The notes under the pieces: model-generated
Told to the model about the DNA's origin: nothing
The model's database searches: none
What the model saw: the letters and a program-made list of their open reading frames with translations, nothing else
Part shown: positions 628 through 57,426 of the stretch, one piece after another
Layout of the letters: each line of letters starts with the position of its first letter
Position numbering within the stretch: the stretch's first letter is position 1
Made by a program: the position numbers and the translations under genes
DNA from: Pristiophorus japonicus
Taxonomy: Eukaryota
Direction of reading: 5' to 3'
DNA length: 64,000 nt
Assembly: GCF_044704955.1 (NCBI RefSeq)
Contig: NC_092006.1
Coordinates: 4,836,001 to 4,900,000 of the forward strand

Positions 628-705
628 TCATATCCATGAGCTGTTCACTTTCCTTTCCTGTCGGACTGTTGGATCCGCCTTAAATGCCAGTTGGGCGTAA
701 AGAGT
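628..705 (-). CDS. Gene A exon 6: TLYAQLAFKADPTVRQERKVNSSWI* (ITIM/ITSM-like)
   Basis: Acceptor ttctgttttctctcatag; phase 0; homologous to 12831-12875 and 37314-37349. Confidence 0.85.
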   Translation of the reverse strand, partial: TLYAQLAFKADPTVRQERKVNSSWI

Positions 706-3700
706 CTATGAGAGAAAACAGAAACCATTATCGCGGCTCACATCATCACCATCGGAACGGAGTGACAGGAGGAGGCCATTCAGCCCCTCGAGCATGTTCC
801 CCCACTCAATAAGATAAGAACATAAGAAATAGGAGCAGGAGTCGGCCATTCGGCCCCTCGAGCCTGCTCCGCCACTTAATGAGATCATGGCCGATCTGAT
901 CATGGACTCAGCTCCACTCCCCTGCCTGCTCCCCATAACCTCTTATCGCCATCGTTCAAGAAACTGTCTATCTCTGTCTTAAATTTATTCAATGTCCCGG
1001 CTTCCACAGCTCTCTGAGGCAGCAAATTCCACAGATTCACAATCCTCTGAGAGAAGAAATTTCTCCTCATCTCAGTTTTAAATGGGCGGCCCCTTATTCT
1101 AAGATCGTGCCCCCTAGTTCTAGTCTCCCCCATCAGTGGAAACATCCTCTCTGCATCCACAGCTGATCCTGTATCTTAACTCACTCTACCCACCTTGGTT
1201 CCCTAACCCTTAATCCCCTTACCCAACAAGAGTCGATCCACCTCTGTCTTGACATTTCCAACTGACCCCTGACCTCGACAGCTTTTTGGGGGAGAGAGTT
1301 CCAGATTCCCGCTCCCCTTTGTGTGAAGAAGTGTTTCCTGTCATCACCCCTGAACGGTCTGGCTCGAAATTTAAGGTGACGTCCCCTTGGTCTGGACTCA
1401 CCCCGCCAAAGGAACTCATTTCTCTCTCTATCCACCTATCGAACACTTTAATCATCATAAACAACTCGATTAGATCGCCCTTTAATCTTCTATACTCCAG
1501 GGAATAAAAGCTTAGTCTGTGCGACCTGTCTTAATAATTTAACGCTTTTAGCCCCTGTATTATTAGTTAGGCCACAGCTGAAGTACTGCGTGCAGCTCTG
1601 GTCACCACATTACAGGAAAGATGTGATTGCACTGGAGAGGGTGCAGAGGAGATTTACCAGGATGTTGCACTGGAGAGGGTGCAGAGGAGATTTACCAGGA
1701 TGTTGCACTAGAGAGGGTGCACAGGAGATTTACCAGGATGTTGCACTAGAGAGGGTACAGAGGAGATTTACCAGGGTGTTGCACTGGAGAGGGTGCAGAG
1801 GAGATTTACCAGGATGTTGCACTGGAGAGGGTGCAGAGGAGATTTACCTGGATGTTGCACTGGAGAGGGTACAGAGGAGATTTACTAGGATGTTGCACTG
1901 GAGAAGGTGCAGAGGAGATTTACCAGGATGTTGCACTGGAGAGGGTGCAGAGGAGATTTACCAGGATGTTGCACTGGAGAGGGTGCAGAGGAGATTTACC
2001 AGGATGTTGCACTAGAGAGGGTGCAGAGGAGATTTACCAGGATGTTGCACTGGAGAGGGTACAGAGGAGATTTACCAGGATGTTGCACTAGAGAGAGTAC
2101 AGAGGAGATTTACCTGGATGTTGCACTGGAGAGGGTACAGAGGAGATTTACTAGGATGTTGCACTGGAGAGGGTGCAGAGGAGATTTACCAGGATGTTGC
2201 ACTAGAGAGGGTGCAGAGGAGATTTACCAGGATGTTGCACTGGAGAGGGTGCAGAGGAGATTTACCAGGATGTTGCACTAGAGAGGGTGCAGAGGAGATT
2301 TACCAGGATGTTGCACTAGAGAGGGTGCAGAGGAGATTTACCAGGATGTTGCACTAGAGAGAGTACCGAGGAGATTTACCAGGATGTTGCACTGGAGAGG
2401 GTACAGAGGAGATTTACTAGGATGTTACACTAGAGAGGGTGCAGAGGAGATTGACCAGGACATTGCACTAGAGAGGGTACAGAGGAGATTTACCAGAATG
2501 TTGCACTAGAGAGGGTACAGAGGAGATTTACCAGGATGTTGCATGGACTGGAGAATTTTAGCGATGAGGAAAGATTGGATAGGCTGGGGGTTGTTTTCTC
2601 TGCAACAGAGGAGGCTGAGGGGAGACCTGATTGAGGTGTATAAAATGATGAGGAGCCTGGATAGAGTGGATAGGACGGACCTGTTTCCCTTGGCAGAGGG
2701 GGTCAACAACCAGTGGGCATAGATTGAAAGTAATTGGGCGGAGGTTTAGAGGGGATTTGAGGGGAAATGTCTTCACCCAGAGGGTGGTGGGGGTCTGGGG
2801 CGGAACTCACTGCCTGAAAGGGTGGTAGAGGCAGAAACCCTCACCACATTTAAAAAGTACCTGGATGTGCACTTGAAGTGCCGTAACCTACAGGGCTACG
2901 GATTGAGAGCGGGAATGTGGGATTAGGCCGGGTGGCTCTTGGTCGGCCGGCGTGGGACACGATGAGCCGAATGGCCTCCTTCCGCGCTGTAAACTTCTGT
3001 GATTCTATGATTATTCTGTCAACTTGTAATTATATATAATCGGCAACTTAAAACATAGACCGATATTTTGTAATCTGTTTTTGCAGTTCTATCAAAATAA
3101 ACTGCTTTCCTGCGGAGTTCATTATGCAAAGTTTTATAGAATCGTTAACTATGAATCTTAACCGTTGGATTAAGGATGAGTGCAGGTAACTGCAAGGTGT
3201 CAAGCAAAGACAATTATTTTCACTCTCACCTCCTTATCTCTTGCACCTGGTCTGGAATCCGTGAATTTCTCATCGCTGGCCGTGTTACCTGAAATAAAGG
3301 GAATGCAATCTAAGTCTAAATGCACACACATTTCACGCTGACATGCACCGAGCCAAACGTTGTTTCCTTCAGGTAATTATCCAACTCCCTTTTGAAAGCC
3401 ACGTTTGAGTCTGCCTCTACCACCCTCTCAGGCAGTATGTTCCAGACCCTAACCACTCGCTGCTTAAAAATAGTTTTTCTTCATTTCGCCTTTGCTTCTT
3501 CTGCCTTAAATCTGTGTCCTCTGCTTCTCCACCCTTCTCCCAACGAGAACAGTTCCTCTCTGTCTGGACCCCTCACGATTTGGCCTTCCTGACTTGGGCA
3601 TAGGTCATTGGGTCACAATCCCGGAATTCCCTCCCTAACAGCACTGTTAGGAGCACCTTCACCACAGCGGACTGTCGAACTCGTTTGGCAGAACGTCTCA

Positions 3701-6700
3701 TCGCCAGAGCTGTCACACAAGCACCAACATGTAGCTTGATTGGCGGTGAGGAGGGCCTTACCCGTCAGAGCCTTCATGCACAGCCGGCGTCTCAGCAGCA
3801 CGGCACGGTGCCCCCGAGTTGGCTGCAGGGCGGACGAGACTGTCACCCATCTCCTTCAGGTTTGCCCCTTCGCAAGGCAGGTTTGGAAAGAGATGCAGTG
3901 GTTGCTGTCGAGGTTCATCCCGAGCAGCTCTGTAACACAGGACTCTGTGCTCTAGGGGCTGTTCCCAGGGACACACACCGAGACAGACATCACCTGCTGC
4001 TGGAGGGCCATCAACTTGGTCAAAGACGCTCTTTGGTCTTGCCGAGACTTGCTGGTCTTCCAGAGCAAGGAGATGTCCACGTCTGCGTGTTGCAGACTGG
4101 CGCAATCCACGATCCAGGATTACGTGCTGAGGGACGCACTTAAAATCGGTGCAGTCGCCGCAAAGGCACGGTGGGGAAGGGCCGCAGTTTAAAGCCCTTC
4201 TGACATGGTAAACCCAGGGGCAGGAATCAGTACAAAACTCCCCTCGGGCCGTACTTGTAACTTCTTTTTTGTGTCCATGGAGCACCATGATCTGTAAACA
4301 CCTGTGTAGTGTCATGTACAATGTAAGGTCTGTTTCGTAATGCACGTTGAAAAGAAAAATGTAAATGTACCGTCACCCATTCCGTGTACTGTATAGTGAC
4401 ACACGTAATGTAATTTGTCGAATGTACTACAAGGTATCCCGTATTGTACCGAATTGTACTTGAACTGAAAAGCAAAGAAATGTATCGAACGGAACTGCCG
4501 TCAGCACCCAAATGTAGTGTATGGGATTGCTGACCGCAGCTAAATGTACTGAACTGCTTTTGAATGTACTGTACAAATTTTTATACGAATAAAGTATATT
4601 TTGAAATTAAAAAAAATAACACAGTAACTGGATAGATTGGCCGCGCCTCTCGACCGCCGCTACCTGACTGCCGGGTCCTGCAGCTCCAGCTCGCCATCAC
4701 CGTCACCATCAGGAGGAGGAGAAGCGCCACCGAGCAAGTCACCAAAACCCATAAACTACAGTCGCTGTGCAGCGGGAGCCCTGTACACAAGGGGGAAAAA
4801 CAGCCTCTTAGTTAAAAGAAAATCCCGTAACCCAAGCCCTCTGCTTCTCGCAGGAGGTTCAGGGAGACCCAATACCATCTTCCAGGGTCCACGAGGGTTA
4901 GATACTCAATACCAAGTCTTCCCAACATCAATAGATAGAGATNNNNNNNNNNNNNNNNNNNNNNNNNNNNNNNNNNNNNNNNNNNNNNNNNNNNNNNNNN
5001 NNNNNNNNNNNNNNNNNNNNNNNNNNNNNNNNNNNNNNNNNNNNNNNNNNNNNNNNNNNNNNNNNNNNNNNNNNNNNNNNNNNNNNNNNNNNNNNNNNNN
5101 NNNNNNNNNNNNNNNNNNNNNNNNNNNNNNNNNNNNNNNNNNNNNNNNNNNNNNNNNNNNNNNNNNNNNNNNNNNNNNNNNNNNNNNNNNNNNNNNNNNN
5201 NNNNNNNNNNNNNNNNNNNNNNNNNNNNNNNNNNNNNNNNNNNNNNNNNNNNNNNNNNNNNNNNNNNNNNNNNNNNNNNGATACGTGTATAGATAGATAG
5301 ACCGACAGATTTATGGATAGACAGACAGATAGATGGATAGATACATCGATAAATCAATAGATAGACAGATAGACAGATATATTTATGGATAGACAGATAG
5401 ATAGATCGACAGACAGACACAGACAGACAGATAGAGGAGGTGCAACGAGACCTGGGTGTCATGGTACATCAGTCATTGAAAGTTGGCATGCAGCTACAGC
5501 AGGTGGTGAAGAAGGCAAATGGCATGTTGGCCTTCATAGCGAGGGGATTTGAGTATAGGAGCAGGGAGGTCTTACTGCAGTTGTACAGGGCCTTGGTGAG
5601 GCCTCACCTGGAATATTGTGTTCAGTTTTGGTCTCCTCATCTGAGGAAGGACATTCTTGCTATTGAGGGAATCAGCAAAGGTACACCAGACTGATTCCCG
5701 GGATGGCAGGACTGACATATCAAAAAAGGCTGGATCGACTAGGCTTATATTCACTGGAATTTAGAAGAATGAGAGGGGATCTCATAGAAACATATAAAAT
5801 TCTGACGGGACTGGACAGGTTAGATGCAGGAAGAATGTTCCCGATGTTGGGGAAGTCCAGAACCAGGGGTCACAGTCTCAGGATAAGGGGTAAGCCATTT
5901 AGGACCGAGATGAGGAGAAACTTCTTCACTCAGAGAATTGTGAACCTGTGGAATTCTCTACCACAGAAAGTTGTTGAGGCCAGTTCGTTGGATATATTCA
6001 AGAGGGAGTTAGATGTGGACCTTACGGCTAAAGGGATCAAGGGGTATGGAGAGAAAGCAGGAATGGGGTACTGAAGTTGAATGATCAGCCATGATCATAT
6101 TGAATGGTGGTGCAGGCTCGAAGGGCCGAATGGCCTGCTCCTGCACCTACTTTCTATGTTTCTATATTTGGACGGACGGATAGATGGTAAACAGACAGAT
6201 AGTTTACAGATAATACAACACTTGGTAAAGCAGTGGATCAGGATGAGGATAATTATAGGCTGCAGGAGAGCACAGACGGGTTGGTGAAATGGCCGTCAGC
6301 ACGGCCGGTGGGGTTCAAAGCGGGGAAGTGTTAAGTGTTTCAGTTTGGGAGGGGTAACATGGACAGACAATGTACTGTGAATGGCATCGAGCGAGGACGT
6401 GATCCACCGGAAATGGCAGTATATTATTCTCCAATTTGACCCATGGATCGCCCAGGAATATACCTGCTCTCCCAGCAGGTAGATATGACCTAGCAGGACA
6501 GAAGGACCTTATAATTGAGAAAGGTAAACATTGAGAGATCTGGGAGAGGTAAATCATTGAGATACTTACACACGAATTTGCAGAAAGGAAGAGAATTTGA
6601 ATGTATAACGTGACAGGGCTAACAATGATCTCTTACATCACCATTGAAGATATTAGTGAAGGAGAATAGTTACCGCTCAGCGATGAGATGCTTTCACTGA

Positions 6701-8375
6701 TGAAATTGTCGGTGGAATTGACCGGAACGGCGCAAGTGCAGACAGCGCCACTCCGCCAAGTTTCCGCCGAGACGCTGAGGTGACTCCCGACCGTGAGCGT
6801 CCCGTCCGGCTCGGTGGTCCCGGAGTCGCTCTGTCCCTCGGCGAGCCGTCCCGAAACAGTCCAGCGGACGGGAAGGGAATCGGGAGTCAGGCTTCTGACC
6901 AGACACAGCAGCGGGACCCTCGCCAGCGAGGGAATTTCGTCCTGCGGCGGAGTTAAGAGCTGTATTTCCGGAGACCCTGCCGAATTTGGGGAGGATTAAT
7001 ATTCGACGGAAATCGCTCGTTATTTACAACGAAATTTGTAAACGAATTCTTACCTGTAATGAGCAATTTCGAGCCGTTTCCGAATATAAGGTGCAATAGA
7101 CTAGATTTCTTAGCTGCGCAGTAATACACCCCTGAATCGTTCCCCTGGACCTCGTTCACAATCAGAGAGTAAATATTGAATTTGTCGTCAATTTGTCCGG
7201 AAAACCTCCCTTCAGGAATATTGTAGTTTCTCACAGTGTAAACTTTCTGGAGAGGTCCTCGGTTCTGCTGCTTATACCACTGCACAGCTCGAGATACCAA
7301 CTGACCAGTGTGACAATCCGCCTTGAAGGTACTGCCAACTGAGAGAGTCTGGACCGACGGACTCTGGGCGAAATAGTCCTGGGGGGCAATAACTGAGAGA
7401 AGAACATGGTCACCACGGGGTCTGTTACAAGAGGAATAAACACCGCTTCAGATCAAGAAACCCACAAAGCAGTGAACGGTGAGAGAGGCGCTCGTGTTCA
7501 AGGAGCCTCATTTCTAATTGAGTTCAATGCTGAGGGTTAACATTGAGCCAATAACAGGAGANNNNNNNNNNNNNNNNNNNNNNNNNNNNNNNNNNNNNNN
7601 NNNNNNNNNNNNNNNNNNNNNNNNNNNNNNNNNNNNNNNNNNNNNNNNNNNNNNNNNNNNNNNNNNNNNNNNNNNNNNNNNNNNNNNNNNNNNNNNNNNN
7701 NNNNNNNNNNNNNNNNNNNNNNNNGAGAAAGAGAAAGATAGAGAAAGAGAGAGAGAAAAAGAAAGAGAGAGAAAGAAAGATAGAGAAAAAGAGAGAGAAA
7801 GAAATAGAGAGAAAGAGAGAGAAACAGATAGAGAAAAAGAGAGAGAGAAAGAAAGATAAAGAGATAGAGAGAGGGAAAGAAAGAAAGAGTTGGATTTATA
7901 TAGCGCCTTTCGCAACCACTGGACTCAAAGTGCTTTACAGCCAATGAAGTACTTTTTGAAGTGTAGTCACTGTTGTAATGTGGGAAACACGGCGCACAGC
8001 AAGCTCCCACAAATAGCAATGTGATAATGACCCAGATCAGCTGTTTTCGAGATGCTGATTGAGGGATAAATATTGGCCCCAGGACACAGGGGAGAACTCC
8101 CCTGCTCTTCTTCGAAATAGTGGCCGTGGGATCTTTTACGTCCGCCTGAGAGACCAGACGGGGCCTCGGTTTAACGTCTCAGGCAATAGATGCAGAATAT
8201 TGACATTAGGTCTATTTCCCACCAGCCTGAGATATTGCACGATGCTAATATCAGTGAACGCAGCGCGTAATCTCCGACTCGGCTGATCTTACGCCGCAGT
8301 TCCGCCATGGATTACCAGCAAATTCGACTGACCTGGAAAGAGAAGGGCGAGCACGCAGGGAGCTAAGCGATGCAT
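628..8375 (-). CDS. Gene A: non-rearranging VJ-C1-TM-ITIM Ig-superfamily receptor, 6 coding exons, 312 aa
   Basis: Exons 8375-8333, 7392-7054, 6976-6674, 4780-4664, 3288-3230 and 705-628. All are GT-AG with phases 1,1,1,1,0. Total 939 nt, open from ATG to TGA. Exon sizes match paralogs B and C. Confidence 0.88.
755..1560 (-). mobile_element. Nested CR1 3' fragments (young copy 812-1160 inside an older one)
   Basis: [12 protein letters not shown] motifs; (TAAGAACA)n tail. Confidence 0.8.
1565..3012 (+). mobile_element. CR1 3' fragment containing an internal tandem array
   Basis: QLWSPHYRKDVIALERVQRRFTRML..FTQRVV; tail tctatgatt. Confidence 0.85.
1626..2545 (+). repeat. 38-bp minisatellite GATGTTGCACTGGAGAGGGTGCAGAGGAGATTTACCAG, about 24 copies
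   Basis: Direct tandem repetition of a CR1 ORF2 segment. Confidence 0.95.
3230..3288 (-). CDS. Gene A exon 5: 59-nt cytoplasmic exon (G)NTASDEKFTDSRPGARDKE
   Basis: Acceptor ccctttatttcag, donor gag|gtgaga; phase 1 to 0; same length and phase as gene C exon 35067-35125. Confidence 0.78.
3672..4617 (+). mobile_element. Tx1/L1-clade LINE 3' end
   Basis: CPRVGC..ETVTHLLQVC C-terminal zinc-knuckle-like motif, long 3' UTR, AATAAA at 4588, A-tract at 4609. Confidence 0.75.
4664..4780 (-). CDS. Gene A exon 4: stalk and TM (G)LPLHSDCSLWVLVTCSVALLLLLMVTVMASWSCRTRQS
   Basis: Acceptor tttttcccccttgtgtacag, donor cag|gtagcg; 117 nt; hydrophobic span followed by basic residues. Confidence 0.87.
4943..5279. 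other. Assembly gap (N run) inside a GATA/GACA microsatellite (to about 5435)
   Basis: Run of Ns flanked by (GATA/GACA)n. Confidence 0.98.
5436..6165 (+). mobile_element. CR1 3' fragment
   Basis: [27 protein letters not shown]. Confidence 0.9.
6674..6976 (-). CDS. Gene A exon 3: C1-type Ig domain ([55 protein letters not shown]..)
   Basis: 303 nt, phase 1/1. C1-set pattern: LxPP, LxCLV, PxxxxVxW, DG-x-x-T-x-x-S-x-L, W-x-SG-x-x-x-TC. Not shown in the ORF track in this frame. Confidence 0.92.
7054..7392 (-). CDS. Gene A exon 2: V domain with in-exon J motif (..KADC..VQWYKQ..GRFSG..DSGVYYCAAKKSSLLHLIFGNGSKLLIT)
   Basis: 339 nt; acceptor ttcttctctcag, donor acag|gtaaga; canonical Cys, Trp, DSGxYYC and FGxG. 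Confidence 0.93.
7562..7885. repeat. Assembly gap (7562-7724) and GA-rich microsatellite in gene A intron 1
   Basis: Ns followed by (GA/GAAA)n. Confidence 0.95.
7886..8180 (-). mobile_element. Deu-domain SINE (SacSINE1-like), 3' part
   Basis: Reverse complement of the 3' half of the SINE at 27400-28065. Confidence 0.75.
8333..8375 (-). CDS. Gene A exon 1: leader MHRLAPCVLALLFP
   Basis: ATG plus 43 nt, donor ccag|gtcagt; hydrophobic; same size as the B and C leaders. Confidence 0.82.
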
Positions 8376-8449
8376 TGTCTGCGACTTGAGGCGTTTGCTG
8401 TCCAGCTTCACACTGACGCTTTGCCGGGAGGTCTTTGCGCCCGCAAGCG

Positions 8450-8600
8450 ACGTGAAATGCACACAGCTTGCAGAACGTGCGTTTAAAAATAGCGGTCTGG
8501 AAAATCCAGCCCGGTGCAAAAGCTGGCTGCGGGTTTCCTGTTGACACACGAGGCGCCCACGCACAGATGTGCCTGCAAAGGGCAATGTGTTACAGCTGGT
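8450..8600 (-). promoter_or_regulatory. Gene A proximal promoter (ETS-like/RUNX-like AACAGGAAACCCGCA, AT-rich box, GCATTTCAC)
   Basis: These motifs occur in the same order upstream of the B (22985-23145) and C (29655-29815) leaders, in otherwise diverged sequence. Confidence 0.5.
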
Positions 8601-8934
8601 CTGAAGGGTGCTGTGCAGTCGAGACCCATTAAACCGTGAACTAACGCCAGGCGGTGCAGAATTCCACACACCGTGTACCGCTTGTGCAATTCGAGTGGCC
8701 GCGGGGGAATTATCCCGTTTCCGAGTGTTGCGATCGATTGGTCCAGAATGCATTCATTGATACACCCTTACTCGTACCAACAAAAAATGGATCACATTCT
8801 GCCCAGAGAATGCCCTTCAAATTCTTACACTGGTAAAAAAGCAGGCACAAGGCCTCTTCTTTTTTACCAGCGTAAGAGTTTAAAGCAACAGGAAAATAAA
8901 ATATCATCACCTATTAGCTGTAGGCTGCAGGACA

Positions 8935-9405
8935 ATCGAACTGACCACACTCGATCAGCTCCACTGGGCAGGCCACATAGTTCGCATGCCAGACACGAGA
9001 CTCCCAAAGCAAATGCTCTATGCGGAGCTCCGTCATGGTAATCGAGCCAAAGGTGGGCAGAGGAAACGTTACAAGGACCACTCTCAAAGCCTCCCTGGTA
9101 AAGTGCGACATCACCACCGATACCTGGGAGACCCTGGCCGCAGACCGCCCGAGGTAGAGAACGTCCATCCGGGAGGGCGTTGAGCCCTTCGAGTCTCGAC
9201 GCAAAGAGCGTGAAGAGGTCAGGCACAGGCAGCGGAAGGAGCGCGCGGCAAACCAGCCCCACCCACCCCTTCCCCCGCCGAATGTCTGTCCCACCTGTGA
9301 CAGGGTCTGTGACTCTCGTATCGGACCGTTCAGCCACCAGAGAACTCACTTTGGGAGTGAAGGCACGTCTTCCCTGATTCCGAGGGACTGCCTGTGATGA
9401 TGATG
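8935..9405 (+). mobile_element. RTE-clade LINE 3' fragment
   Basis: WAGHIVRMPDTRLPKQMLYAEL..GGQRKRYKD; (TGA)n tail. Confidence 0.8.
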
Positions 9406-9409
9406 ATAA

Positions 9410-10838: not shown

Positions 10839-10857
10839 AAGCGCCCCCTGGAGGCAA
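10839..10857 (-). promoter_or_regulatory. Candidate CTCF site
   Basis: Minus strand reads ttGCCTCCAGGGGGCGCtt, close to the vertebrate CTCF core CCACCAGGGGGCGC; lies in non-repeat DNA between genes A and B. Confidence 0.55.
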
Positions 10858-22901: not shown

Positions 22902-22984
22902 TATCCCTGCCCCAGGAGGGTTGAACTCTGATGCTGGGACTGGCAGCTCAGGGAGGAATGCTTGTCAGCAGGTCGGTGCGAGGC

Positions 22985-23145
22985 TGGTGTGAAATGCCGA
23001 GCCAATTGTGGTAAGCACGCACTGTGTTTATTAATAAATGTACGATTTGGGCTGCAAAATAGTGCCGAAGCAGAAAGCTCTGTGTGGGTTTCCTGTTTTT
23101 ACAGGTAAAGAGATGAAACACACACACACCATCTGTGTTACAGAA
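22985..23145 (-). promoter_or_regulatory. Gene B proximal promoter
   Basis: AACAGGAAACCCACA at 23083-23097 (minus strand), TTTATTAATAAA, GCATTTCAC. Confidence 0.5.
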
Positions 23146-23599
23146 GGCACCTCGTCTCTACGCATGTTAGTTTGACCACACTTGGAGCACTGCGCACGGT
23201 TCTGGTCTCCATCTTTCAAAAGAATATAGAGGCACTGGAGCGGGTGTAAACAAGATTCAGAAAGATGACACCAGAACTGAGAGAGGTTATACTGATCAGG
23301 AAAGGCTGGACAGACTGGGGCACTTTTCTCCAGAAAATTACATAGTATGCACATCACAAAAACAGACCATTCAGCCCCACCGCTCCGTGCCGGGGTTTAT
23401 GCTCCACACCAGCCCCTCCCACCTCTCTCCATCTCACCCCATTCGCCATATCCTTCTATTCCTTTCTCCCTCATGTGTTTATCCAGCCTCCCCTTAAATA
23501 CATCGATACTATTCGCCTCAACCCCTCCCTATGGCAGCGAGTTCCACATCTCAGCGCTCTCTGGGTCAAGAAGTTTCTCCTGAATTCCCCATTGGGTTT

Positions 23600-27395: not shown

Positions 27396-27399
27396 CATA

Positions 27400-28065
27400 G
27401 TGTCAGCTGTGGTTGTGGGTAGCACACTCGTCTCAGAGTCAGAAGGTCATCGGTTCAAGTCCCACTCCAGGAACTTGAGCATATAAATCCAGGATGGCAC
27501 TCCCAGTGCAGTGCTGAGGGAGCGCCGCACTGTCGGAGGGGCGGTGCTGAGGGAGCGCCGCACTGTCGGAGGGGCGGTGCTGAGGGAGCGCCGCACTGTC
27601 GGAGGGGCGGTGCTGAGGGAGCGCCGCACTGTCGGAGGGGCAGTGCTGAGGGCGCGCCGCACTGTCGGAGGGTCCGTACTGAGGGAGTGCCGCATTGTCA
27701 TAGGGACGATACTGAGGGAGCGCCGCACTGTCGGAGGTGCTGTCTTTCAGATGAGACATTTAAACCGAGGCCCTGTCTGCCCTCTCAAGTGGATGTAAAA
27801 GATCCCATGGCACTATTTCGAAGAAGAGTAGGGGAGTTATCTCTGGTTCTTGGCCAATATTTATCCCTCAATCTACAAAGCAGATGATCTGGGTCATTAT
27901 CACATTGCTGTGTGTGGGAGCTTGCTGTGCGCAAATTCAGCTGCCGCGTTTCTCACATTACAACAGTAACTATACTCCAAAAGTACTTCATTGCTGTAAA
28001 GCGCAGTTTGAGACATCCAGTGGTCATGAAAGGCGCTCTATAACTGCAATGGTTTTCTTCTTTCT
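27400..28065 (+). mobile_element. Near full-length tRNA-derived Deu-domain SINE (SacSINE1-like) with an internal 33-bp array (27510-27740)
   Basis: tRNA-like head with B-box GGTTCAAGTCC; core gatgagac..taaaccgagg..aaagatcccatggcact; tail gaaaggcgctctataa. The family name is from recollection, not a search. Confidence 0.75.
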
Positions 28066-28907: not shown

Positions 28908-29280
28908 AACATAGAATCATAGAAAATAGGTGCAGGAACAGGCCATTCGGCCCTTTGAACCTGCACCACCATTCAATATGATCATGGCTGATCATGCAAC
29001 TTCAGTACCCCATTCCTGCTTTCTCTCCATACCCCCTTGATCCCTTCAGCCGTAAGGACCACATCTAACTCCCTTTTGAATATATCCAACGAACTGGCCT
29101 CAACAACTCTCTGCAGGAGAGACTTCCACAGGTTCACAATTCTCTGAGTGAAGATGTTTCTCCTCATCTCGGTCCTAGATGGCTTACCCCTTATCCTGAG
29201 AGTGTGACCCCTGGTTCTGGACTTCCCCAACATCGGGAACATTCTTCCTGCATCTACCCGGTCCAATCCCGGCAGAATCT
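28908..29280 (-). mobile_element. CR1 3' fragment present only in the gene C arm
   Basis: Interrupts homology with the 23520 region. Confidence 0.85.
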
Positions 29281-29654
29281 GAGGCGAATAGTATCGATGC
29301 ATTTAAGGGGAGGCTGGATCAACACATGAGGGAGAAAGGAATAGAAGGATATGGGGATGGGGTGAGATGGAGAGTGGTGGGAGGGGCTGGTGTGGAGCAT
29401 AAACCCCGGCACGGAGCGGTGGGGCTGAATGATCTGTTTCTGTGATGTACATTCTCTCTAATTTTCGAGAGAAAAGTGCCCCAGTCTGTTGAGCCTTTCC
29501 TGATCAGTATAACCTCTCTCAATTCTGGTGTCATCTTTCTGAATCTTGTTTACACCCGCTCCAGTGCCTCTATATTCTTTTGAAAGATGGAGACCAGAAC
29601 CGTGCGCAGTGCTCCAAGTGTGGTCAAACTAACATGCGTAGAGACGAGGTGCCT

Positions 29655-29815
29655 TCTGTAACACAGATGGTGTGTGTGTGTTTTATCTCTTTACCTGTAA
29701 AAACAGGAAACCCACACAGAGCTTTCTGCCTTGGCACTATTTTGCAGCCCAAATCGTACATTTATTAATAAACACAGTGCGTGCTTACCACAATTGGCTC
29801 GGCATTTCACACCAG
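29655..29815 (+). promoter_or_regulatory. Gene C proximal promoter
   Basis: AACAGGAAACCCACA at 29702-29716, TTTATTAATAAA at 29761, GCATTTCAC at 29802. Confidence 0.5.
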
Positions 29816-29897
29816 CCTCGCACCGACCTGCTGACAAGCATTCCTCCCTGAGCTGCCAGTCCCAGCATCAGAGTTCAACCCTCCTGGGGCAGTGATA

Positions 29898-29940
29898 ATG
29901 AGCTTCTGTGGCCTCTGTGTGCTGTTCCATCTCTTCCAAG
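29898..29940 (+). CDS. Gene C leader exon [14 protein letters not shown]
   Basis: atgagcttc...ttccaag|gtgaga, 43 nt. Confidence 0.84.
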
Positions 29941-32900
29941 GTGAGATAGCCTTCGATGTTTTGCCAGAGTGGGGAAGGGGTTAGGAGAGAGTCAACCAAG
30001 GGAAGGGTTTTGGAGCGAATTAATAAGGAAAAGGGTTTTGGAGAGAATTAATAAGGTGAAGGGTTTTGGAGGGAATTAATAAGGAGAAGGGTTTTGGATA
30101 GAATTAATGAGGAGAAGGGTTTTGGAGAGAATTAAAAAGGAGAAGGGTTTTGGAGGGAATTAATAAGGAGAAGGGTTTTGGAGAGAATTAAAAAGGAGAA
30201 GGGTTTTGGAGGGAATTAATAAGGAGAAGGGTTTTGGATAGAATTAATAAGGAGAAGGGTTTTGGAGAGAATTAAAAAGGAGAAGGGTTTTGGAGGGAAT
30301 TAATAAGGAGAAGGGTTTTGGATAGAATTAATGAGGAGAAGGGTTTTGGAGAGAATTAATAAGGAGAAGGGTTTTGGATACAATTAATCAGGAGAAGGGT
30401 TTTGGATAGATTTAATAATGAGAAGGGTTTTGGATAGAATTAATAAGGAGAAGGGTTTTGGAGAGAATTAATAAGGAGAAGAGTTTGGATAGATTTAATA
30501 ATGAGAAAGGTTTTGGATAGAATTAATAAGGAGAAGGGTTTTGGAGAGAATTAATAAGGAGAAGGGTTTTGGAGAGAATTAATAACGAGAAGGGTTTTGG
30601 AGAGAATTAATAAGGAGAAGGGTTTTGAATAGATTTAATAATGAGAAGGGTTTTGGATAGAATTAATAATGAGAAGGGTTTTGGATAGAATTAATAATGA
30701 GAAGAGTTTGGATAGATTTAATAATGAGAAAGGTTTTGGATAGAATTAATAAGGAGAAGGGTTTTGGAGAGAATTAATAAGGAGAAGGGTTTTGGATACA
30801 ATTAATAAGGAGAAGGGTTTTGGATACAATTAATAAGGAGAAGGGTTTTGGATAGAATTAATAAGGAGACGAGTTTGGATAGATTTAATAATGAGAAAGG
30901 TTTTGGATAGAATTAATAAGGAGAAGGGTTTTGGATACAATTAATAAGGAGAAGGGTTTTGGATAGATTTAATAATGAGAAGGGTTTTGGATAGAATTAA
31001 TAAGGAGAAGGGTTTTGGAGAGAATTAATAAGGAGAAGGGTTTTGGAGAGAATTAATAAGGAGAAGGGTTTTGAATAGATTTAATAATGAGAAGGGTTTT
31101 GGATAGAATTAATAAGGAGAAGGGTTTTGGATAGAATTAATAAGGAGAAGGGTTTTGGAGAGAATTAATAAGGAGAAGGGTTTTGGATAGAATTAATCAG
31201 GAGAAGGTTTTGGAGAGAATTAATAAGGAGAAGGGTTTTGGAGAGAATTAATGAGGGGAAGGTTTTGGAGAGAGTTAATAAGGAGGAGGGTTTTGGAAAG
31301 CATTAATAAGGAGAAGGGATTTGGAGAGAATTAATAAGGAGAAGGGTTTTGGATAGAATTAATAATGAGAAGGTGTTTTGGATAGAATTAATAATGAGAA
31401 CGGTTTTGGATAGAATTAATAAGGAGAAGGGTTTTGGAGAGAATTAATAAGGAGAAGGGTTTTGGCTAGATTTAATAATGAGAAGGGTTTTGGATAGAAT
31501 TAATAATGAGAAGGGTTTTGGAGAGAATTAATAAGGAGAAGGTGTTTTGGATAGAATTAATAATGAGAACGGTTTTGGATAGAATTAATAAGGAGAAGGG
31601 TTTTGGAAAGAATTAATAAGGAGAAGGGTTTTGGAGAGAATTAATAATGAGAACGGTTTTGGATAGAATTAATAATGAGAAGGGTTTTGGATAGAATTAA
31701 TAAGGAGAAGGATTTTGGAAAGAATTAATAAGGAGAAGGGTTTTGGATAGATTTAATAAGGAGAAGGGTTTTGGATAGATTTAATAAGGAGAAGGGTTTT
31801 GGATAGAATTAATAATGAGAAGGGTTTTGGATAGAATTAATAAGGAGACGGGTTTTGGATAGAATTAATAAGGAGAAGGTTTCCGATCGAGTAAAGAAGG
31901 AGAGATTGTTTCCAGTGGGAGGAGGGTGGGTAAGCAGAGGACACATGTTTGAGATAATCGGTAACAGAACCAGAGGGGGAGTTCAGGACGTGATTTCAAG
32001 CCCTGGGAGCTTGTGCTCGGGAACGCGCTGCCTGAAAGGGGCACTGGGAGCAGATGAAAAAGTGACTTTCAAACGGGGGAATTGGATAAATATTTGGAAA
32101 GGAGGCAATATGCCGGGCTGTGGGGAAAGAGCAGGGGCGGAGTGGGAATGATTGAGTCGCTCTGTCACAGAGCCGGCACAACACAGGTTTGATGGGCCGA
32201 ATGGCCTCCTGTGTTGCATCGTTCGATGATACACAAGTTTGCGTTTAACTATAATTTTTTTAAGAAGCAGCTTAGATATTGGGCAAAGTATAAAGGTGTG
32301 CGGGCTTCGCTCAATACCGATCGCGCGACTTTGGAGCCGAACATTGTGATGGGTGAGTGGAAGCGAATGTGACACTGAACTGCCCCCTAACTGAGATAAA
32401 GATGTCAGTGAACTCCGGTATTTGAAGGCGAGGGTCTGCCGTTGGGAGAGGGGGGCCTGTCTAGTGGAATTAGTGAGAAAGCTATCGCCCCATTTTAACA
32501 TAATCAAGCGCCCCCCGGTCCCCAACCCCTGGAGAGATGGATTGGAGAGCCGGGTTAGACCAGGGGGAAGCATAATCGGTTTGGGAGAAGGCTTTTGCAA
32601 TCTTAACTGCAGCCAGTCGCCATGGTGCTCGCCAATGATTGGAGCGGATTTCACAGCGAACGGACTCGGACTGTGCGCCTGTGGGAATTGCGGGCGGAGA
32701 GGCGCAATTTAACGGTGCGCAGCGCGGCGGAATTTCCCACACGCGCTCCCGACGCGCCAGTGGAGGGGAATTTGAGATGTGTCGGTATCCAGGGTGACTC
32801 GGGGGCCTATAACCTGTTGTTAATATTGTGTTTTTTTAATTTTTGTGTCCCCCCCCCCGCAACCTTGTCTCAGCTGTCGTGTCTCAGGCGGTCTTGAGCC

Positions 32901-35900
32901 AATTTCCGGCGCTGCTAACGGCCGATGTCGGGAGCCTGGTCAAACTGCAATGCCAGTCCGGGAGGCTGGCCCCGGGCATCGTTTACTGGTACACACACTG
33001 GCCCCGAGAGGGCATGCGGCTCGTTTACAAAACCGGACGGTTCGTGACGCCCGGGGGAAGATTTTCCGGCGAGGTATGCAAGCAATCGGGGAATTATTCG
33101 CTGGTCATTGACAATGTCCAGAGGAACGATTCTGGGCGGTATTACTGCGCTGCTCCAAACGCCGGGAATCGGACCCTGATATTCGGGACTGGCACCACGC
33201 TGGTGATCACAGGTAATCCCACACGCCCATCCAATTGTGCGTCGAGACACCAATTCAAACCTGCCTTGTGCGCCTGGTTAATTCCAATTTCCCTTCCATC
33301 TAGCGGGCCCCCCGGTCCTCTTCCTCTTAACGCCGCCGCCGGCTGAGATTCCCCGGCTGGAGAGGGTGCCCTTGATGTGTCTGGTGCGGGGCGCTGCTCC
33401 TGACTCCTCCCCCATCCGCTGGCTGGTTGCGGGACGGGCCGCCGAGGGACGGAGCGAGCCCGGGACGCTGGAGCCGGACGGGAGCTATACCGCCAGAAGC
33501 GTCCTGAGCGTCTCGGCCGAAACCTGGCGCAGCGGCGCCGTCTGCACTTGCACCGTTCCGATCAACGCCACCGGGGATCTCCTGAGTGAAAGCGTCGCGT
33601 CTCCGGGAGGTAACTGGAGCTACTGGCGGTTTGCCAAATAGTTAGTGATAATAATGTTCATTATAGTATTGCTGGGATGTGAGGGTTTTTTTTGCACGAG
33701 AGATTGTGTAGAATGGGCCTATGTTCTCTGGAGTTTCGTATAAGATGATGAGGGGGCTTGACAAGCTGGATGCAGAGAGGATGTTTCCACTGATGGGGGA
33801 GTCTAGAACTAGAGGGCATAATCTCAGAATAAGGGGCCGCCCATTTAAAACTGAGATGAGGAGGAATTTCTTCTCTGAGGGTTGTAAATCTGTGGAATTC
33901 GCTGCCTCAGAGAGCTGTGGAAGCCGGGACATTGAGTAAATTTACGATAGAAATAGACAGTTTCTTAACTGATAAGTAATTAAGGGGTTATGGGGAGCGG
34001 GCAGGGAAGTGGAGCTGAGTCCATGATCGGATCAGCCATGATCGTATTGAATGGCGGAGCAGGCTCGAGGGGCCGAATGGCCGACTCCTGCTCCTATTTC
34101 TTATGTTCTTATGGAGTTTCGAAGAAGGAGAGGTGATCTCATTGAAACGTACAAGACTCTGAGGGGGATTGACAGGGTGGATGCAGGGAGGGTGTTTCCC
34201 CCCGGGGCTGGGGAGTCTAGAACCAGGGGTCACACAGTCTCAGGGTAAGGGGTTGGCCATTTAAGACTAAGATGGGGAGAACGTTCTTCACTTGCGATTT
34301 ACTACGTTACAGGCGCTATATAAATATAAGTTGTTGTATATTGGGAGCACTAGTATGGAAAAGTAGTATTTTATAAATGACATGAGTTTGGAAAACAGCG
34401 AGACAGAGAGAGACCATATACACAAACCTGTAAATGTGGGAAGGGCAGGTTGGCGAGCTGGTTAAACTGGCTTACGGGGTACTTGAATTTATATAAGGAG
34501 ATATTGGAACAGTTGACCAAAAGCTTGGTCAAAGAGGGAGGTTTTACAGAAGGAGGAGAGGCGGAGAGGTTTAGGGAGAGAGTTCCAGAGCTTGGGGCCC
34601 CAGGCAGCTGAAGGCACGGCCACCAATGGTGGAGCGATAGAAATCGGGGGGAATGCTCAAGAGGCCAGGATTGGAAGAGCGCAGAGATCACAGCCACTTA
34701 CGTTGAGACAGTTCATAGTTCGTCACCATGTCTTTGATGATTCGGGCCAAAAACCAGCTTCAAACCCTCAGCGGACGAGGTTTCAGAATTTGACTGAATT
34801 ATTTTGTGTTTCGCTCATTTCACAAGAGTTGTCTTTCTGCCGTTCAGAGCCCCTTCACAGCTCGACCTGCCGCTTCGCGCTTTATGCCAGCCTGGCGATG
34901 GCTCCTCTTGTGATGGGGTTGATCGGTGTCGCGGTGGCACGGCGTGGCAAGACTCGCCAACCAGGTACTGCCCGTCTGAGCCAAACCCTCAATTTCGCCT
35001 TTAGCTGAACCTCTCCCTTTGGCGTGCCGGCCTGGACATTAACGCCAGTCATCTTCTTAAACCTAGAGAGTGCAGCCACGACTGACCGAGGTACCGCTTC
35101 AAGAATAAAGAAAGCAGAAGAGGAGGTAGGTGCCACAAAGATGGGAGATGTTATTTTCATTAAAGAGCGGGGGGCGGGACTAATTGGATCATGCTTTCAA
35201 AGAGCCGACACAAGCTCGAAGGGCCAACTAGCCTCCTTCTGTGCTGTAAGATTCTATACTGGTGTCAAGTGTTTCATTGGTGTCCATGGACATGTCCGTT
35301 GTCAGTAACTTCAATGAGACATTCACATTAATACACTTGTGCCTCTCTCAGAAACAACCCAAAGCTATTCACCTGCAATGAATTGCATAAGAACATAAGA
35401 ACATAAGAATTAGGAACAGGAGTAGGCCATCTAGCCCCTCAAGCCTGCTCCACCATTCAACAAGACCATGGCTGATCTGGACGTGGACTCAGCTCCACTT
35501 ACCCGCCCGCTCCCGTAACCCTTAATTCCCTTATTGGTTAAAAATCTATCTATCTGTGACTTGAATGCATTCAATGAGCTAGCCTCAACTGCTTCCTTGG
35601 GCAGAGAATTCCACAGATTCACAACCCTCTGGGAGAAGAAATTCCTTCTCAACTCGGTTTTAAATTGGCTCCCCCGTATTTTGAGGCTGTGCCCCCTAGT
35701 TCTAGTCTCCCCGACCAGTGGAAACAAACTCTCTGCCTCTATCTTGTCTATCCCTTTCATTATTTTAAATGTTTCTAGAAGATCACCCCTCATCCTTCTG
35801 AACTCCAACGAGTAAAGACCCAGTCTACTCAATCTATCATCATAAGGTCACCCCCTCATCTCCGGAATCAGCCGAGTGAATCGTCTCTGTACCCCCTCCA

Positions 35901-37349
35901 AAGCCAGTATATCCTTCCTTAAGTAAGGTGACCAAAACTGCACGCAGTACTACAGGTGCGGCCTCACCAATACCCTATACAGTTGCAGAAGGACCTCCCT
36001 GCTTTTGTACTCCATCCCTCTCGCAATGAAGGCCAACATTCCATTCGCCTTCCTGATTACCTACTGCACCTGCAAACTAACTTTTTGGGATTCATGCACA
36101 AGGACCCCCAGGTCCCTCTGCACCGCAGCATGTTGTAATTTCTCCCCATTCAAATAATATTCCCTTTTACTGTTTTTCTTCCCAAGGTGGATGACCTCAC
36201 ACTTTCCGACATTGTATTCCATCTGCCAAACCTTAGCCCATTCGCTTAACCTATCTAAATCTCTTTGCAACAGTGATGTCTTGCATTTAAATAGCGCCTT
36301 TGATGTCCTAAGGCGCTTCACAGGAGCATTAGTCAGACAAAAATTAAAGGTCGAACCCCACGAGGAGAGATTACGACAGGTGAGCAAAGGCTTGGCCGAG
36401 GAGGGAGGTTTTAAGGAGGAGAGAGGGGCGGAGAGGTTTAGGGAGGGAGTTCCAGAGCTTGGGGCCCAGGCAGCTGAAGGCACGGCCACCGATGGTGGAG
36501 CGATTATAATCAGGGATGGTCAAGAGGGCAGAATTGGAGGAGCAGTAGGAGATAGGGAGGGATGTAGGTGCTGGAGGAGAGTACAGAGATAAGGAGGGGT
36601 GTATGGGCTGGAGGAGATTACAGAGATAGAGAGGGGTGTAGGGGCTGGAGCAGGTTACAGAGATAGGGAGGGGTGTAGGGGTTGGAGGGGGTTACAGAGA
36701 TAGGGAGGGGTGTAGGGGTTGGAGGGGGTTACAGAGATAGGGAGGGGTGTAGGGGCTAAAGGAGGTCACAGAGATAGGGAGGGATGTAGGGGCTGGAGGA
36801 GGTTACAGAGTTAGGGAGGGATGTAGAGGCTGGAGGAGGTTGCAGAGATAGGGAGGGGTGTAGGGCTGGAGGAGAGGCAGTACTGAGGGAGCGCCGCACT
36901 GTCGGAGGAGCAGTACTGAGGGAACACCGCACTGTCGGAGGGACCGTCTTTCGGCTGAGACGTTAAACCGAGGCACCATCTGCCCTCTCGGTTGTAAAAG
37001 ATCTATTGGAAGAAGAGCAGGGGGAGTTCTCCCCGGTGTCCTGGGGCCAATATTTATCCCTCAACCAACATCACTAAAAACAGATGATCCGGGTCATTAT
37101 CACATTGCTGTGTGTGGGAGCTTGCTGTGCGCAAATTGAGCTGCCGCGTTTCCCACAATACAACAGTGACTGCACTTCAAAAAGTACTTCATTGGCTGTA
37201 AGGCGCTTTGGGACGACCGGTGGTGGTGAAGGGCGCTATAGAAATGCACGTCTATTTCTTTTCAATATAGTTGAGCAGGAAGGTAACGGTTTTCTCGTGT
37301 TGTTCCTTCACAGACTATGTACGCGCACCTGGCATTCGCTGTGGATTAG
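29898..37349 (+). CDS. Gene C: non-rearranging VJ-C1-TM-ITIM receptor, 6 coding exons, 299 aa
   Basis: Exons 29898-29940, 32874-33212, 33304-33609, 34848-34964, 35067-35125 and 37314-37349. Total 900 nt, open frame; AATAAA at 37562. Confidence 0.9.
30001..31880. repeat. 28-bp minisatellite (reverse complement of 19705-22800) in gene C intron 1, about 67 copies
   Basis: (GGTTTTGGAKAGAATTAATAAGGAGAAG)n running into a CR1 remnant at 31880-32220. Confidence 0.95.
32874..33212 (+). CDS. Gene C VJ exon
   Basis: 339 nt; [28 protein letters not shown]; cag| and |gtaatc ends. Confidence 0.94.
33304..33609 (+). CDS. Gene C C1-type Ig domain exon
   Basis: 306 nt; 7 nt differences from the gene B C1 exon by hand count. 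Confidence 0.93.
33735..34295 (+). mobile_element. Nested CR1 3' fragments in gene C intron 3
   Basis: [17 protein letters not shown]..; tail tcttatgttcttatg. Confidence 0.85.
34490..34690 (-). mobile_element. L2-like LINE 3' fragment (also at 36270-36545 and 48930-49180)
   Basis: Minus strand [15 protein letters not shown]-type C-terminus found at three sites. Confidence 0.6.
34848..34964 (+). CDS. Gene C stalk and TM exon (E)[38 protein letters not shown]
   Basis: Acceptor ctttctgccgttcag, donor ccag|gtactg; 117 nt as in gene A; shares PLHS..C and TRQ with gene A. Confidence 0.87.
35067..35125 (+). CDS. Gene C 59-nt cytoplasmic exon (E)[19 protein letters not shown]
   Basis: Acceptor tcttcttaaacctag, donor gag|gtaggt; phase 1 to 0. 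Confidence 0.8.
35386..36270 (-). mobile_element. CR1 3' fragment
   Basis: [32 protein letters not shown]; (TAAGAACA)n. Confidence 0.9.
36545..36875. repeat. 37-bp minisatellite GGGAGGGGTGTAGGGGYTGGAGGRGGTTACAGAGATA, about 9 copies
   Basis: Period 37 read directly; continuous with the L2-like fragment. Confidence 0.85.
36876..37262 (+). mobile_element. Deu-domain SINE, 5'-truncated, ending about 50 nt before the gene C terminal exon
   Basis: Matches 27700-28065. Confidence 0.8.
37314..37349 (+). CDS. Gene C terminal exon [11 protein letters not shown]
   Basis: Acceptor tgttgttccttcacag; TxYxxLAF as in A and B. Confidence 0.85.
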   Translation, partial: TMYAHLAFAVD

Positions 37350-57337: not shown

Positions 57338-57426
57338 CCATCCGTGAATTTTGGGCAATAATTTCAAGTCCAAATATTTAATACAAGAGCAGGTACAGTT
57401 CTTTCAGCGAGAAGATGGCTGTTTTC

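Follow-up and report, generated by a model that had tools for sequence, protein, structure and literature searches.

Three VJ-C1 receptor genes of Pristiophorus japonicus as probable members of an elasmobranch multigene family with putative ITIM/ITSM-like tails

Positions 628–37349 of the P. japonicus window (the whole stretch of DNA analysed, 64,000 nt) carry three intact receptor genes, A and B on the minus strand and C on the plus strand; the window otherwise contains only repeats. We consider it probable (roughly two chances in three) that these are three functional-looking members of an elasmobranch multigene family of type I membrane receptors that would signal by themselves through an ITIM/ITSM-like tail. 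In each of the three genes, a split leader is followed by a VJ V-set domain in a single exon, a lone C1-set domain, a stalk Cys and an uncharged transmembrane (TM) segment, with a last exon that begins with TxYAxL; no extra Ig exon is present between C1 and TM in A, B or C. All introns are GT-AG, every internal boundary is AG/GT, there are no internal stops, and the phases (1-1-1-1-0) are consistent across the genes. The three-gene cluster proposed in an earlier note on this DNA is confirmed by these open exons, canonical splice sites and fitting phases, and the V domain, C1-type domain, stalk Cys, TM and tyrosine motif that it claimed are found in each gene; its matching exon sizes hold for A and C but not for B, which is without the 59-nt exon. 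Pfam assigns V-set (E-values of 2.5e-12 for gene C and 5.2e-11 for gene A) and C1-set (2.6e-9 and 7.2e-9, respectively), all over the curated cut-offs, and tblastn recovers the V and C1 exons of all three genes. The J motif is the same in B and C, and is LIFGNGSKLLIT in gene A.

Gene C (29898–37349, plus strand) has six exons: a 43-nt split leader (29898–29940, donor gtgaga), identical to the start of the public P. japonicus protein P0001; a 339-nt exon encoding the end of the signal peptide and the VJ V-set domain (32874–33212) and a 306-nt C1-set exon (33304–33609), both assigned by Pfam and covered by a spliced contig; a 117-nt exon with the stalk Cys, the uncharged TM and the start of the tail (34848–34964), also in the spliced contig; a 59-nt cytoplasmic exon (35067–35125); and a terminal exon of 11 residues plus stop (37314–37349), again in the contig. 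The gene C model is the same as P0001 (299 aa; UniRef UPI00398F1FAB), whose database name is 'immunoglobulin kappa light chain-like'. The contig (1111 nt, public run X1) aligns to the V, C1, TM and last exons with 59 nt in between, and is read as RNA because the unique intron bins of gene C have a depth of ~0 in this run. Exon 5 is supported by contig spacing and depth: contig record positions 191–249 amount to 59 nt, and the depth of 11.6 in bin 34956–35109 is what 52 covered bases at depth 34.5 would give. The run X1 contig shows C1 spliced to the TM and tail exons, the point on which the proposed gene models turned. Within V and C1 the contig has 10 mismatches to gene C, which indicates that it derives from an allele, a near-identical C-type paralogue or an assembly mix.

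Spliced transcript evidence is limited to the C type, with none for A or B, and this is one of the observations behind a reading that we regard as very improbable, namely that the three genes include at least one pseudogene or assembly artefact, with A stitched across gaps or B a dead chimera. Two N gaps do lie within gene A (8375–628, minus strand), one in the leader-to-V intron (7562–7724), 170 nt from the V exon, and one in the C1-to-TM intron (4943–5279), 163 nt from the TM exon; neither adjoins an exon, so the frame across the gaps is not at issue. The six exons of gene A, all on the minus strand, are a 43-nt leader (MHRLAPCVLALLFP; 8375–8333, donor gtcagt), which lies across a gap from the V exon; a 339-nt VJ exon (7392–7054, ending YYCAAKKSSLLHLIFGNGSKLLIT), identified by Pfam and placed by the V tree in the A-type V lineage; a 303-nt C1-set exon (6976–6674; Pfam); a 117-nt exon with the stalk Cys and TM (4780–4664); a 59-nt exon (3288–3230, ending SDEKFTDSRPGARDKE), which matches the tail ending SDEELPNSRPRVQEKE of Heterodontus P0156; and a last exon that begins TLYAQLAFKADPTV and ends with the stop (705–628). 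All six match single proteins of other sharks, which argues against stitching. The unity of gene A across the gaps is accordingly a supported, not a proven, prediction, for which the grounds are exon order, strand, phase and this six-exon homology.

Gene B (22901–12831, minus strand) has five exons. Its 43-nt leader (22901–22859), 339-nt VJ exon (18712–18374) and 306-nt C1-set exon (18282–17977) are 97.7%, 96.8% (92% at the amino acid level) and 97.7% identical, respectively, to those of gene C, while its 107-nt exon with the stalk Cys and TM (15550–15444) is A-type (75.5% identity to A, 67% to C), as is its last exon, TLYAQLAFNTEPTL plus stop (12875–12831; 84% identity to A). No 59-nt exon was found: the sole AG..GT candidate (14095–14037) sits in a LINE tail and, after the 107-nt TM exon, would disrupt the frame. 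As 107 and 117 + 59 are both 2 mod 3, gene B stays open with five exons. The missing exon and a tail that hugs the membrane, its tyrosine only ~7 residues away, favour the dead-chimera view, and the latter implies that gene B may not signal; the open, in-phase exons with canonical splice sites argue the other way.

The genes B and C are oriented head to head, within the two arms of an inverted duplication. Arm 1 (17970–23520, minus strand) covers gene B from its upstream region through the leader and V to C1, with a LINE inserted at 19853–20891, and arm 2 (29280–33616, plus strand) comprises the same parts of gene C, at 97–97.5% identity to arm 1, stopping 7 nt past the C1 exon. The divergence of 2.5–3% together with the LINE insertion indicates that the arms are two separate loci, not a double assembly of one. 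Promoter, leader, V and C1 were probably copied by a recent inverted duplication or gene conversion, with gene B retaining an A-type TM and tail alongside its C-type V and C1. Between B and C there are nine nonsynonymous and two synonymous substitutions in V (dN/dS ~1.6), and two nonsynonymous and five synonymous substitutions in C1 (dN/dS ~0.15), a contrast that reaches Fisher p = 0.049 from 18 substitutions in this pair.

More than 40 homologues were found in 14 or more shark and ray species, with 27–39 of full length (~300 aa) in 14 or more elasmobranch species; the full-length matches align over ~100% of their length at 35–56% identity (E-values of 5.5e-92 to 1e-39). Database proteins of the family include P0001, P0156 and P0166. 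Among 18 aligned members, the F-G-x-G of the V exon, the stalk Cys before the TM and the terminal Y-A-x-L are invariant, and A, B and C possess all three features. In a V tree the family is split, with support of 99/99, into two lineages that each contain sharks and rays, and both lineages are older than the shark-ray split; a related V occurs in Callorhinchus. The matching Atlas clusters have 99, 51 and 77 members, and more than 200 database proteins share automatic clusters with these genes. In view of this and of the public model for gene C, the genes cannot be called unrecognised: the databases already predict the family, under misleading antibody names. No curated name is found among the homologues, and a literature search returned no paper describing the shark/ray VJ-C1-TM-YAxL family.

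V and J lie within one exon in each gene, and the whole 64,000-nt window contains no RSS-like sites (≥6/7 in the heptamer and ≥7/9 in the nonamer, with a spacer of 12 or 23 ± 1), which excludes rearranging Ig/TCR genes with separate V and J and RSS. Together with the conservation of the architecture in sharks and rays, these observations bear out the view of the genes as germline-encoded and non-rearranging VJ-C1-TM receptors. They resemble Ig light and TCR chains in having a leader, V-J, C1 and a membrane-proximal Cys, but differ in having no separate V/J, no RSS, an uncharged TM and a putative signalling tail of their own. The TM helices of A, B and C contain no K, R, D or E and so have no charged residues for CD3 assembly; identity as a TCR chain was rejected.

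Among solved-structure sequences, the ectodomain is most similar to lambda-type light chains (~85 bits, range 75–85), with an unbroken alignment across V, J (FGTGT) and C; the best 60 such matches include no TCR chain (i.e. TCR chains score below ~73 bits). An AF2 model (pLDDT 75.5), in which the second domain has the C1 strand pattern and E-F helix, resembles Ig light chains and TCR beta across V and C, with light chains as the top Foldseek matches. Against the description of the genes as built like a TCR chain, the ectodomain sequence is nearer to the lambda-type chains. Sharks are known to have germline-joined Ig genes. The light-chain matches in sequence and structure, and the missing TCR chains, would suit a secondary origin, in which a germline-joined light-chain-type gene gained TM and tail exons to become an innate NK-type receptor and is not a pre-RAG relic; however, identity to the light chains is only ~25%, C1 alone best matches IgH CH3/CH4-type domains, and we judge this origin unlikely. 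Given the age of the V lineages and the related Callorhinchus V, any such conversion would be very old. Nothing in this analysis shows a pre-RAG relic, to which the earlier note had likened the genes.

Comparison with named families identified partial likenesses. UrIg and UrIg2 are, as here, elasmobranch and non-rearranging, with single-exon VJ, split leader and C1-type domains (Flajnik et al. 2023; Sci Adv 2025, PMC12227049), and UrIg2 also has a TM, as do A, B and C. The secreted UrIg carries three C domains and UrIg2 9–11, and each is described singly and not as a clustered array (PMC12227049). UrIg2 (PDB 9dmx) ranks with the best sequence matches, at 86 bits over four domains, although similarity per domain to UrIg/UrIg2 is not above that to ordinary Ig chains. 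Identity with either was rejected on the basis of the single C1 per gene, the tyrosine tail and the multigene cluster. SIRP-alpha (PTPNS1), the named cluster closest in protein-language-model features (0.96), has a V domain with a J-like strand, C1-set, TM and inhibitory motifs of the Y-A-D-L type, but where the shark genes have one C1 domain and one tail tyrosine, SIRP has two and four, respectively, and it was likewise rejected. Teleost NITRs share the germline VJ domain and multigene clusters, and their tails carry ITIMs; the best bony-fish V match is a carp NITR-like protein (P0188, 3.4e-17), over V only (36% of the query). The second domain of NITRs is V/I-type, in contrast to the Pfam C1-set domain here, and this identity was not retained.

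Of the described families, PRARP reportedly has the same architecture. PRARPs, said to have been described in 2019 from chicken, are reportedly non-rearranging VJ-C-TM genes of bony fish, amphibians, reptiles and birds, with one VJ-type V, one Ig/TCR-type C, a TM, a cytoplasmic tail and linked paralogues. They are counted among the joined-VJ IgSF genes (PMC11599192, PMC10751288). A, B and C have this type of layout (single-exon VJ, one C, TM and tail, non-rearranging), and it is possible, although we consider it doubtful, that the shark genes belong to PRARP, in which case both domains would nest in a family that has already been described. Four anuran proteins (P0178, P0193, P0194 and P0195) point in this direction: they have the same domain order of VJ-like, C1 and TM with one terminal I-x-Y-x-x-L, show 27% identity through V, C1 and TM, and align with 70% of the shark profile's length at 8.9e-16. 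Their J motif is, unlike that of the shark genes, degenerate (FNKA/FSKG), and the frog-shark match (67–76 bits) is no better than that of the sharks to lambda light chains, so that no special kinship is shown. The homologue searches gave no bird, reptile or bony-fish V-C1 match. The shark family, compared with PRARP by description only, differs in being large and elasmobranch-wide with two V lineages.

The family tail is 20–45 residues long and ends (E)-[T/S/D]-x-Y-A-x-L-(A-F). In A, B and C the motif (TLYAQL, TMYAHL) has T at −2, and fits neither the strict ITIM ([SIVL]xYxx[IVL]), owing to this residue, nor the strict ITSM (TxYxx[VI]), in which +3 is occupied here by the invariant L. Canonical S/I-x-Y-x-x-L ITIMs occur at the same site in some family members (P0058 and P0053; SVYAGL and SVYARL are among the canonical forms) and in the frog relatives. 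The T at −2 lowers the case that the motif is an ITIM, but not the case that it may work like one. The proposal of a probably inhibitory receptor keeps its tail motif, the invariant C-terminal Y-A-x-L; as TxYxxL lies outside both strict motifs, 'inhibitory' is a role that we infer. Y-A-x-L also conforms to a Yxx-hydrophobic sorting or endocytosis signal, and the single tyrosine per tail and, in gene C, an acidic run (EEE) shortly before it are compatible with such a signal or with a hemITAM-like activating motif. That the tail is one of these and not inhibitory seems to us distinctly unlikely: conservation reaches −3, −2, +1, +4 and +5 (E-T-x-Y-A-x-L-A-F), beyond what sorting needs, the acidic run is not kept across the family, and the site is shared with the canonical ITIMs above.

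For an ITIM/ITSM-like tail we infer a mechanism, from ligand and dimer formation to phosphorylation and the sign of the signal, in which the VJ domain would bind ligand via CDR-like loops, which would diversify between paralogues, while the stalk cysteine probably joins two chains. Ligand binding would lead to phosphorylation of the tail tyrosine, and the phosphotyrosine may recruit SH2-domain phosphatases or adaptors, as in the ITIM/ITSM receptors SIRP-alpha, KIR and NITR. The receptor would signal alone, without CD3- or CD79-like partners.

A further proposal, which we hold to be a long shot, is that the family is the closest living architectural model of the gene that the RAG transposon invaded, with the A- and C-type lineages pairing like TCR alpha/beta or IgH/L, and with the family branching outside the rearranging Ig/TCR genes. 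If true, its build would be nearer to that of an antigen-receptor chain than is that of UrIg or UrIg2, the current candidates.

The window is vertebrate DNA, rich in repeats, and six-frame reading, splice-site inspection, a hydropathy scan and comparison between copies yielded models for three receptor genes: gene A (minus strand, 8375-628; exons of 43, 339, 303, 117, 59 and 78 nt; product of 312 aa), gene B (minus strand, 22901-12831; exons of 43, 339, 306, 107 and 45 nt; 279 aa) and gene C (plus strand, 29898-37349; exons of 43, 339, 306, 117, 59 and 36 nt; 299 aa). Every internal exon boundary carries AG/GT, the introns are of the Ig-type phase 1 up to a phase-0 junction preceding the last exon, and none of the three reading frames contains an internal stop. 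Frame, stops and equality with P0001, a public protein of Pristiophorus japonicus, the Japanese sawshark, were tested on computationally joined exons; similarity searches used exons singly, and whole-protein searches used P0001, to which the gene C product is exactly identical (UniRef UPI00398F1FAB). The splice, phase and stop check bears out the earlier note's placing of three spliceable open genes, and the exon-size pattern that it gave for all three holds for A and C, but not for B, which has no 59-nt exon.

Gene B was scanned for splice sites and compared at the DNA level with A and C, and no 59-nt exon came to light; the sole candidate, out of frame within a LINE tail, was rejected. The TM exon is 107 nt in gene B versus 117 nt in A and C, and since 107 and 117 + 59 both equal 2 modulo 3, the gene B TM exon runs in frame into the last exon, giving a modelled tail of ~19 residues with its tyrosine ~7 residues from the membrane. 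The hydropathy scan located the TM exons of A and B, which tblastn of gene C downstream ORF pieces against the window did not recover. A tblastn search with 15 family proteins matched V and C1 exons at three places only, and the window thus has no fourth copy.

Gene A contains two runs of N, one in the leader-to-V intron (7562-7724, 170 nt from the nearest exon) and one in the C1-to-TM intron (4943-5279, 163 nt from the nearest exon), both flanked by low-complexity repeats and neither crossed by a reading frame. All six gene A exons find their match in single proteins of other sharks: exon 5, for instance, reads ..SDEKFTDSRPGARDKE and its counterpart in the Heterodontus protein P0156 reads ..SDEELPNSRPRVQEKE. 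Strand, order, phase and this six-exon match support, without proving, the continuity of gene A across the gaps.

In genes B and C the leader does not adjoin the V exon, from which it is separated by a 1.9-kb satellite. The satellite, with a 28-bp unit (20892-22825 and 29998-31879; ~68 copies, 91-92% matches), occupies most of the leader-to-V intron in both genes and begins ~58 nt past the leader splice donor. LINE copies encoding endonuclease and reverse transcriptase (38406-41156, 51880-55020, 19853-20791 and many fragments) are spread, with their 3′ tails, through all introns, and the tails yield many spurious ORFs. A retrovirus-like element lies on the minus strand at 55403-59776, with an ORF containing RNase H and integrase domains (57890-59776) and an adjoining 419-aa ORF (55403-56659) that has no Pfam match. 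A ~33-bp tandem repeat family, joined to a ~400 bp repeat, is found at 27508-27677, 36865-36942, 43465-45169, 48510-48903 and 62565-62697, as well as within introns of genes A and C (7880-8190 and 36947-37261), where it stops ~50 nt ahead of the last exon of gene C.

The genes encode type I membrane proteins with an antigen-receptor-type ectodomain. Exon 2 scores above the Pfam V-set curated cut-off (2.5e-12 for C, 5.2e-11 for A) and exon 3 above that for C1-set (2.6e-9 for C, 7.2e-9 for A); because the V exon continues through YYCAA...LIFG(T/N)G(T/S)(T/K)L(V/L)IT, V and J form one exon. Exon 4 encodes a Cys-bearing stalk and a TM helix that has no charged residues, and the last exon starts exactly at the T of TLYAQL (A and B) or TMYAHL (C). 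No RSS-like sites were found by a scan of the whole window (heptamer ≥6/7, nonamer ≥7/9, spacer 12 or 23 ± 1). The earlier note's reading of the genes as non-rearranging, with VJ, C1 and TM segments, is thus sustained. AlphaFold2, run on P0001 with an alignment of 18 sequences, gave a model (mean pLDDT 75.5) in which two Ig domains precede a TM helix and a tail that is disordered; the second Ig domain shows the C1 pattern, E-F helix included. Foldseek returns Ig light chains and TCR beta chains as top matches, with both domains covered.

The V-C1 stretch was found in a single public sequencing run, as Logan contigs (X1, of a kind not on record). A contig of 1111 nt (depth 34.5), aligned on 32800-37400, falls into four pieces, 32872-33210, 33302-33607, 34846-34962 and 37312-37400, with 59 contig letters left over between the third and fourth in the alignment table. 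Bin 34956-35109 has a depth of 11.6, equal to 52 bases at 34.5 (9 of exon 4 and 43 of exon 5), which shows that the contig includes exon 5, and the unique intron bins have a depth of 0-1, such that X1 behaves as RNA. The junction of C1 with the TM and tail exons, on which the earlier note had staked its gene models, is therefore seen in a spliced contig. Relative to gene C, the contig has eight base differences in V, two in C1 and none in the TM or tail exons, so its source is an allele, a near-identical C-type paralog (e.g. P0151, a second public sawshark protein, 339 aa) or an assembly mix. A C-type gene is transcribed and spliced; the RNA support covers the C type only, not genes A or B. 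The 100 nt of the contig upstream of V have no placement. An ORF just 5′ of the V exon (32622-32789, and 18966-18799 on the minus strand) corresponds, at 96% identity, to the alternative first exon of P0151, a model without a signal peptide, and represents either an alternative promoter or a mis-modelled exon.

An exhaustive HMMER search with the gene C V exon returned P0001 (100%, 299 aa) and single-V shark and ray proteins of 220-412 aa; the P0001 search gave 27 matches and an 18-member profile 39, nearly all family matches being ~300 aa with an identical architecture, and E-values drop from 1e-80 to 1e-17 on passing to the matches beyond the family. The source genera are Heterodontus, Mustelus, Cetorhinus, Carcharodon, Scyliorhinus (two species), Rhincodon, Chiloscyllium (two species), Hemiscyllium and Stegostoma, and further Pristis, Leucoraja, Hypanus and Mobula (two species); two partial models from Callorhinchus carry a related V (37%). 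The V canonical residues, F-G-x-G, the C1 Cys and Trp, the stalk Cys and Y-A-x-L are invariant in the alignment. The family is germline-joined and multigene, and has been kept over hundreds of millions of years. Three Atlas clusters (99, 51 and 77 members) match it, the nearest named clusters being SIRP-alpha and TAPBP-like. Two public models, P0115 (Stegostoma tigrinum) and P0036 (Chiloscyllium plagiosum, isoform X2), have V-TM-tail without C1 or V-C1-tail without TM, and may be real isoforms or model errors. Public annotation already contains predictions of these genes, under automatic and conflicting names (kappa/lambda light chain-like, gamma-1/alpha-2 heavy chain-like, Mem5-like, TCR beta-like, lachesin-like, uncharacterized), to which extent their novelty had been overstated; in the literature searched, we found no name for the family and no paper on it.

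Comparison with solved structures by sequence gave, for P0001, a continuous V-J-C alignment to lambda-type light chains (75-85 bits for plain light chains), and the 60 best matches include no TCR chain; the TCR likeness initially emphasized was thus too strong, the ectodomain being nearest to lambda light chains. Taken alone, V is about equally near to IgL V and TCR alpha/delta V, whereas the best match of C1 is to IgH CH3/CH4-type domains. UrIg2 (PDB 9dmx) reaches 86 bits over four domains and so is not closer to P0001 per domain. UrIg and UrIg2 are the only shark non-rearranging antigen-receptor-like genes named in the literature searched (PMC12227049); UrIg is secreted, with VJ and three C domains, UrIg2 has VJ, 9-11 C domains and a TM, and each is described singly, not in clustered arrays (PMC12227049). 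The same paper makes no mention of ITIM, PRARP, SIRP or any single-C family (PMC12227049). In contrast to the three or 9-11 C domains of UrIg and UrIg2, the present genes have one C1. They likewise differ from SIRPs (two C1 domains, four tyrosines), NITRs (second domain not C1), rearranging Ig/TCR genes (RSS) and TCRs (charged TM). The architecture closest to theirs is that reported for PRARP by Fu et al. in 2019. Anuran proteins share the layout of the shark family, with a VJ-like domain followed by C1, TM and an I-x-Y-x-x-L at the end; the shark profile matches them at 8.9e-16, with 27% identity across V, C1 and TM, a match not stronger than that of the shark family to light chains.

Trees of V and C1 domains were built without Ig or TCR references. 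The V tree divides the family (99/99) into a C-type group of 16 rows, including genes B and C, and an A-type group of 26 rows, including gene A; the presence of sharks and rays in each indicates that the split is older than the shark-ray divergence. The C1 tree departs from this division: the C1 of gene A, and likewise that of Heterodontus genes with an A-type V, falls among C-type C1 domains. Genes A and C are 57% identical in V versus 75% in C1. Genes B and C are 97-98% identical in leader, V and C1, but the gene B TM exon is closer to A (75.5% versus 67% to C), as is its last exon (84% versus 58%). Together with window gene A, the Heterodontus francisci proteins P0160 and P0165 combine an A-type V with C-type-like C1, TM and tail. 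Such combinations suggest that, in several species, exons have been exchanged or converted between the two lineages.

Genes B and C lie head to head, ~7 kb apart, within an inverted repeat (17970-23520, gene B arm; 29280-33616, gene C arm; 97-97.5% identity) that starts ~600 bp upstream of the leader and ends 7 nt past the C1 exon, the arms being distinguished by a LINE insertion in that of gene B. The V exons of B and C differ by nine nonsynonymous and two synonymous changes (dN/dS ~1.6), three of the V changes being at CDR1- and CDR3-equivalent positions, and the C1 exons by two and five (dN/dS ~0.15). The contrast (Fisher p = 0.049, few sites) is suggestive of diversifying pressure on V.

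In the proposed mechanism, the VJ domain would bind ligand, the invariant stalk Cys would make covalent dimers and the invariant tail tyrosine would carry the signal. A single complex prediction with two copies of P0001 residues 16-240 (score 0.17, mark 0.32) weighs neither for nor against dimers. The tail motif, [T/S/D]-x-Y-A-x-L, departs from both the strict ITIM and the strict ITSM. In some family members, as in the frog relatives, canonical S/I-x-Y-x-x-L ITIMs occupy the equivalent site, the ITIMs of KIR, LILR and SIRP have similar Y-A-x-L cores, and conservation spans positions −3 to +5; recruitment of SH2 phosphatases or adaptors is for these reasons the likeliest reading, at slightly better than even odds, the rival being a sorting or activating role for the motif. 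The receptors may be inhibitory, as the earlier note proposed.

A declared way of tracing the origin of antibodies and T cell receptors is to look for intact single-exon VJ genes beside C1. This large, old family has the build of a single antigen-receptor chain, with exactly one VJ and one C1, a TM and a cysteine in the stalk, but carries its own tyrosine tail, and it adds genes for placement in V and C1 trees. The window illustrates how such a cluster evolves, by inverted duplication or conversion ending at the end of the C1 exon, with ectodomains and tails swapped between lineages and V changing faster than C1. The 'immunoglobulin light/heavy chain-like' labels in shark annotations call for caution, as they conceal a separate receptor family, a shark counterpart of innate receptors in the style of KIR, SIRP, NITR and PRARP.
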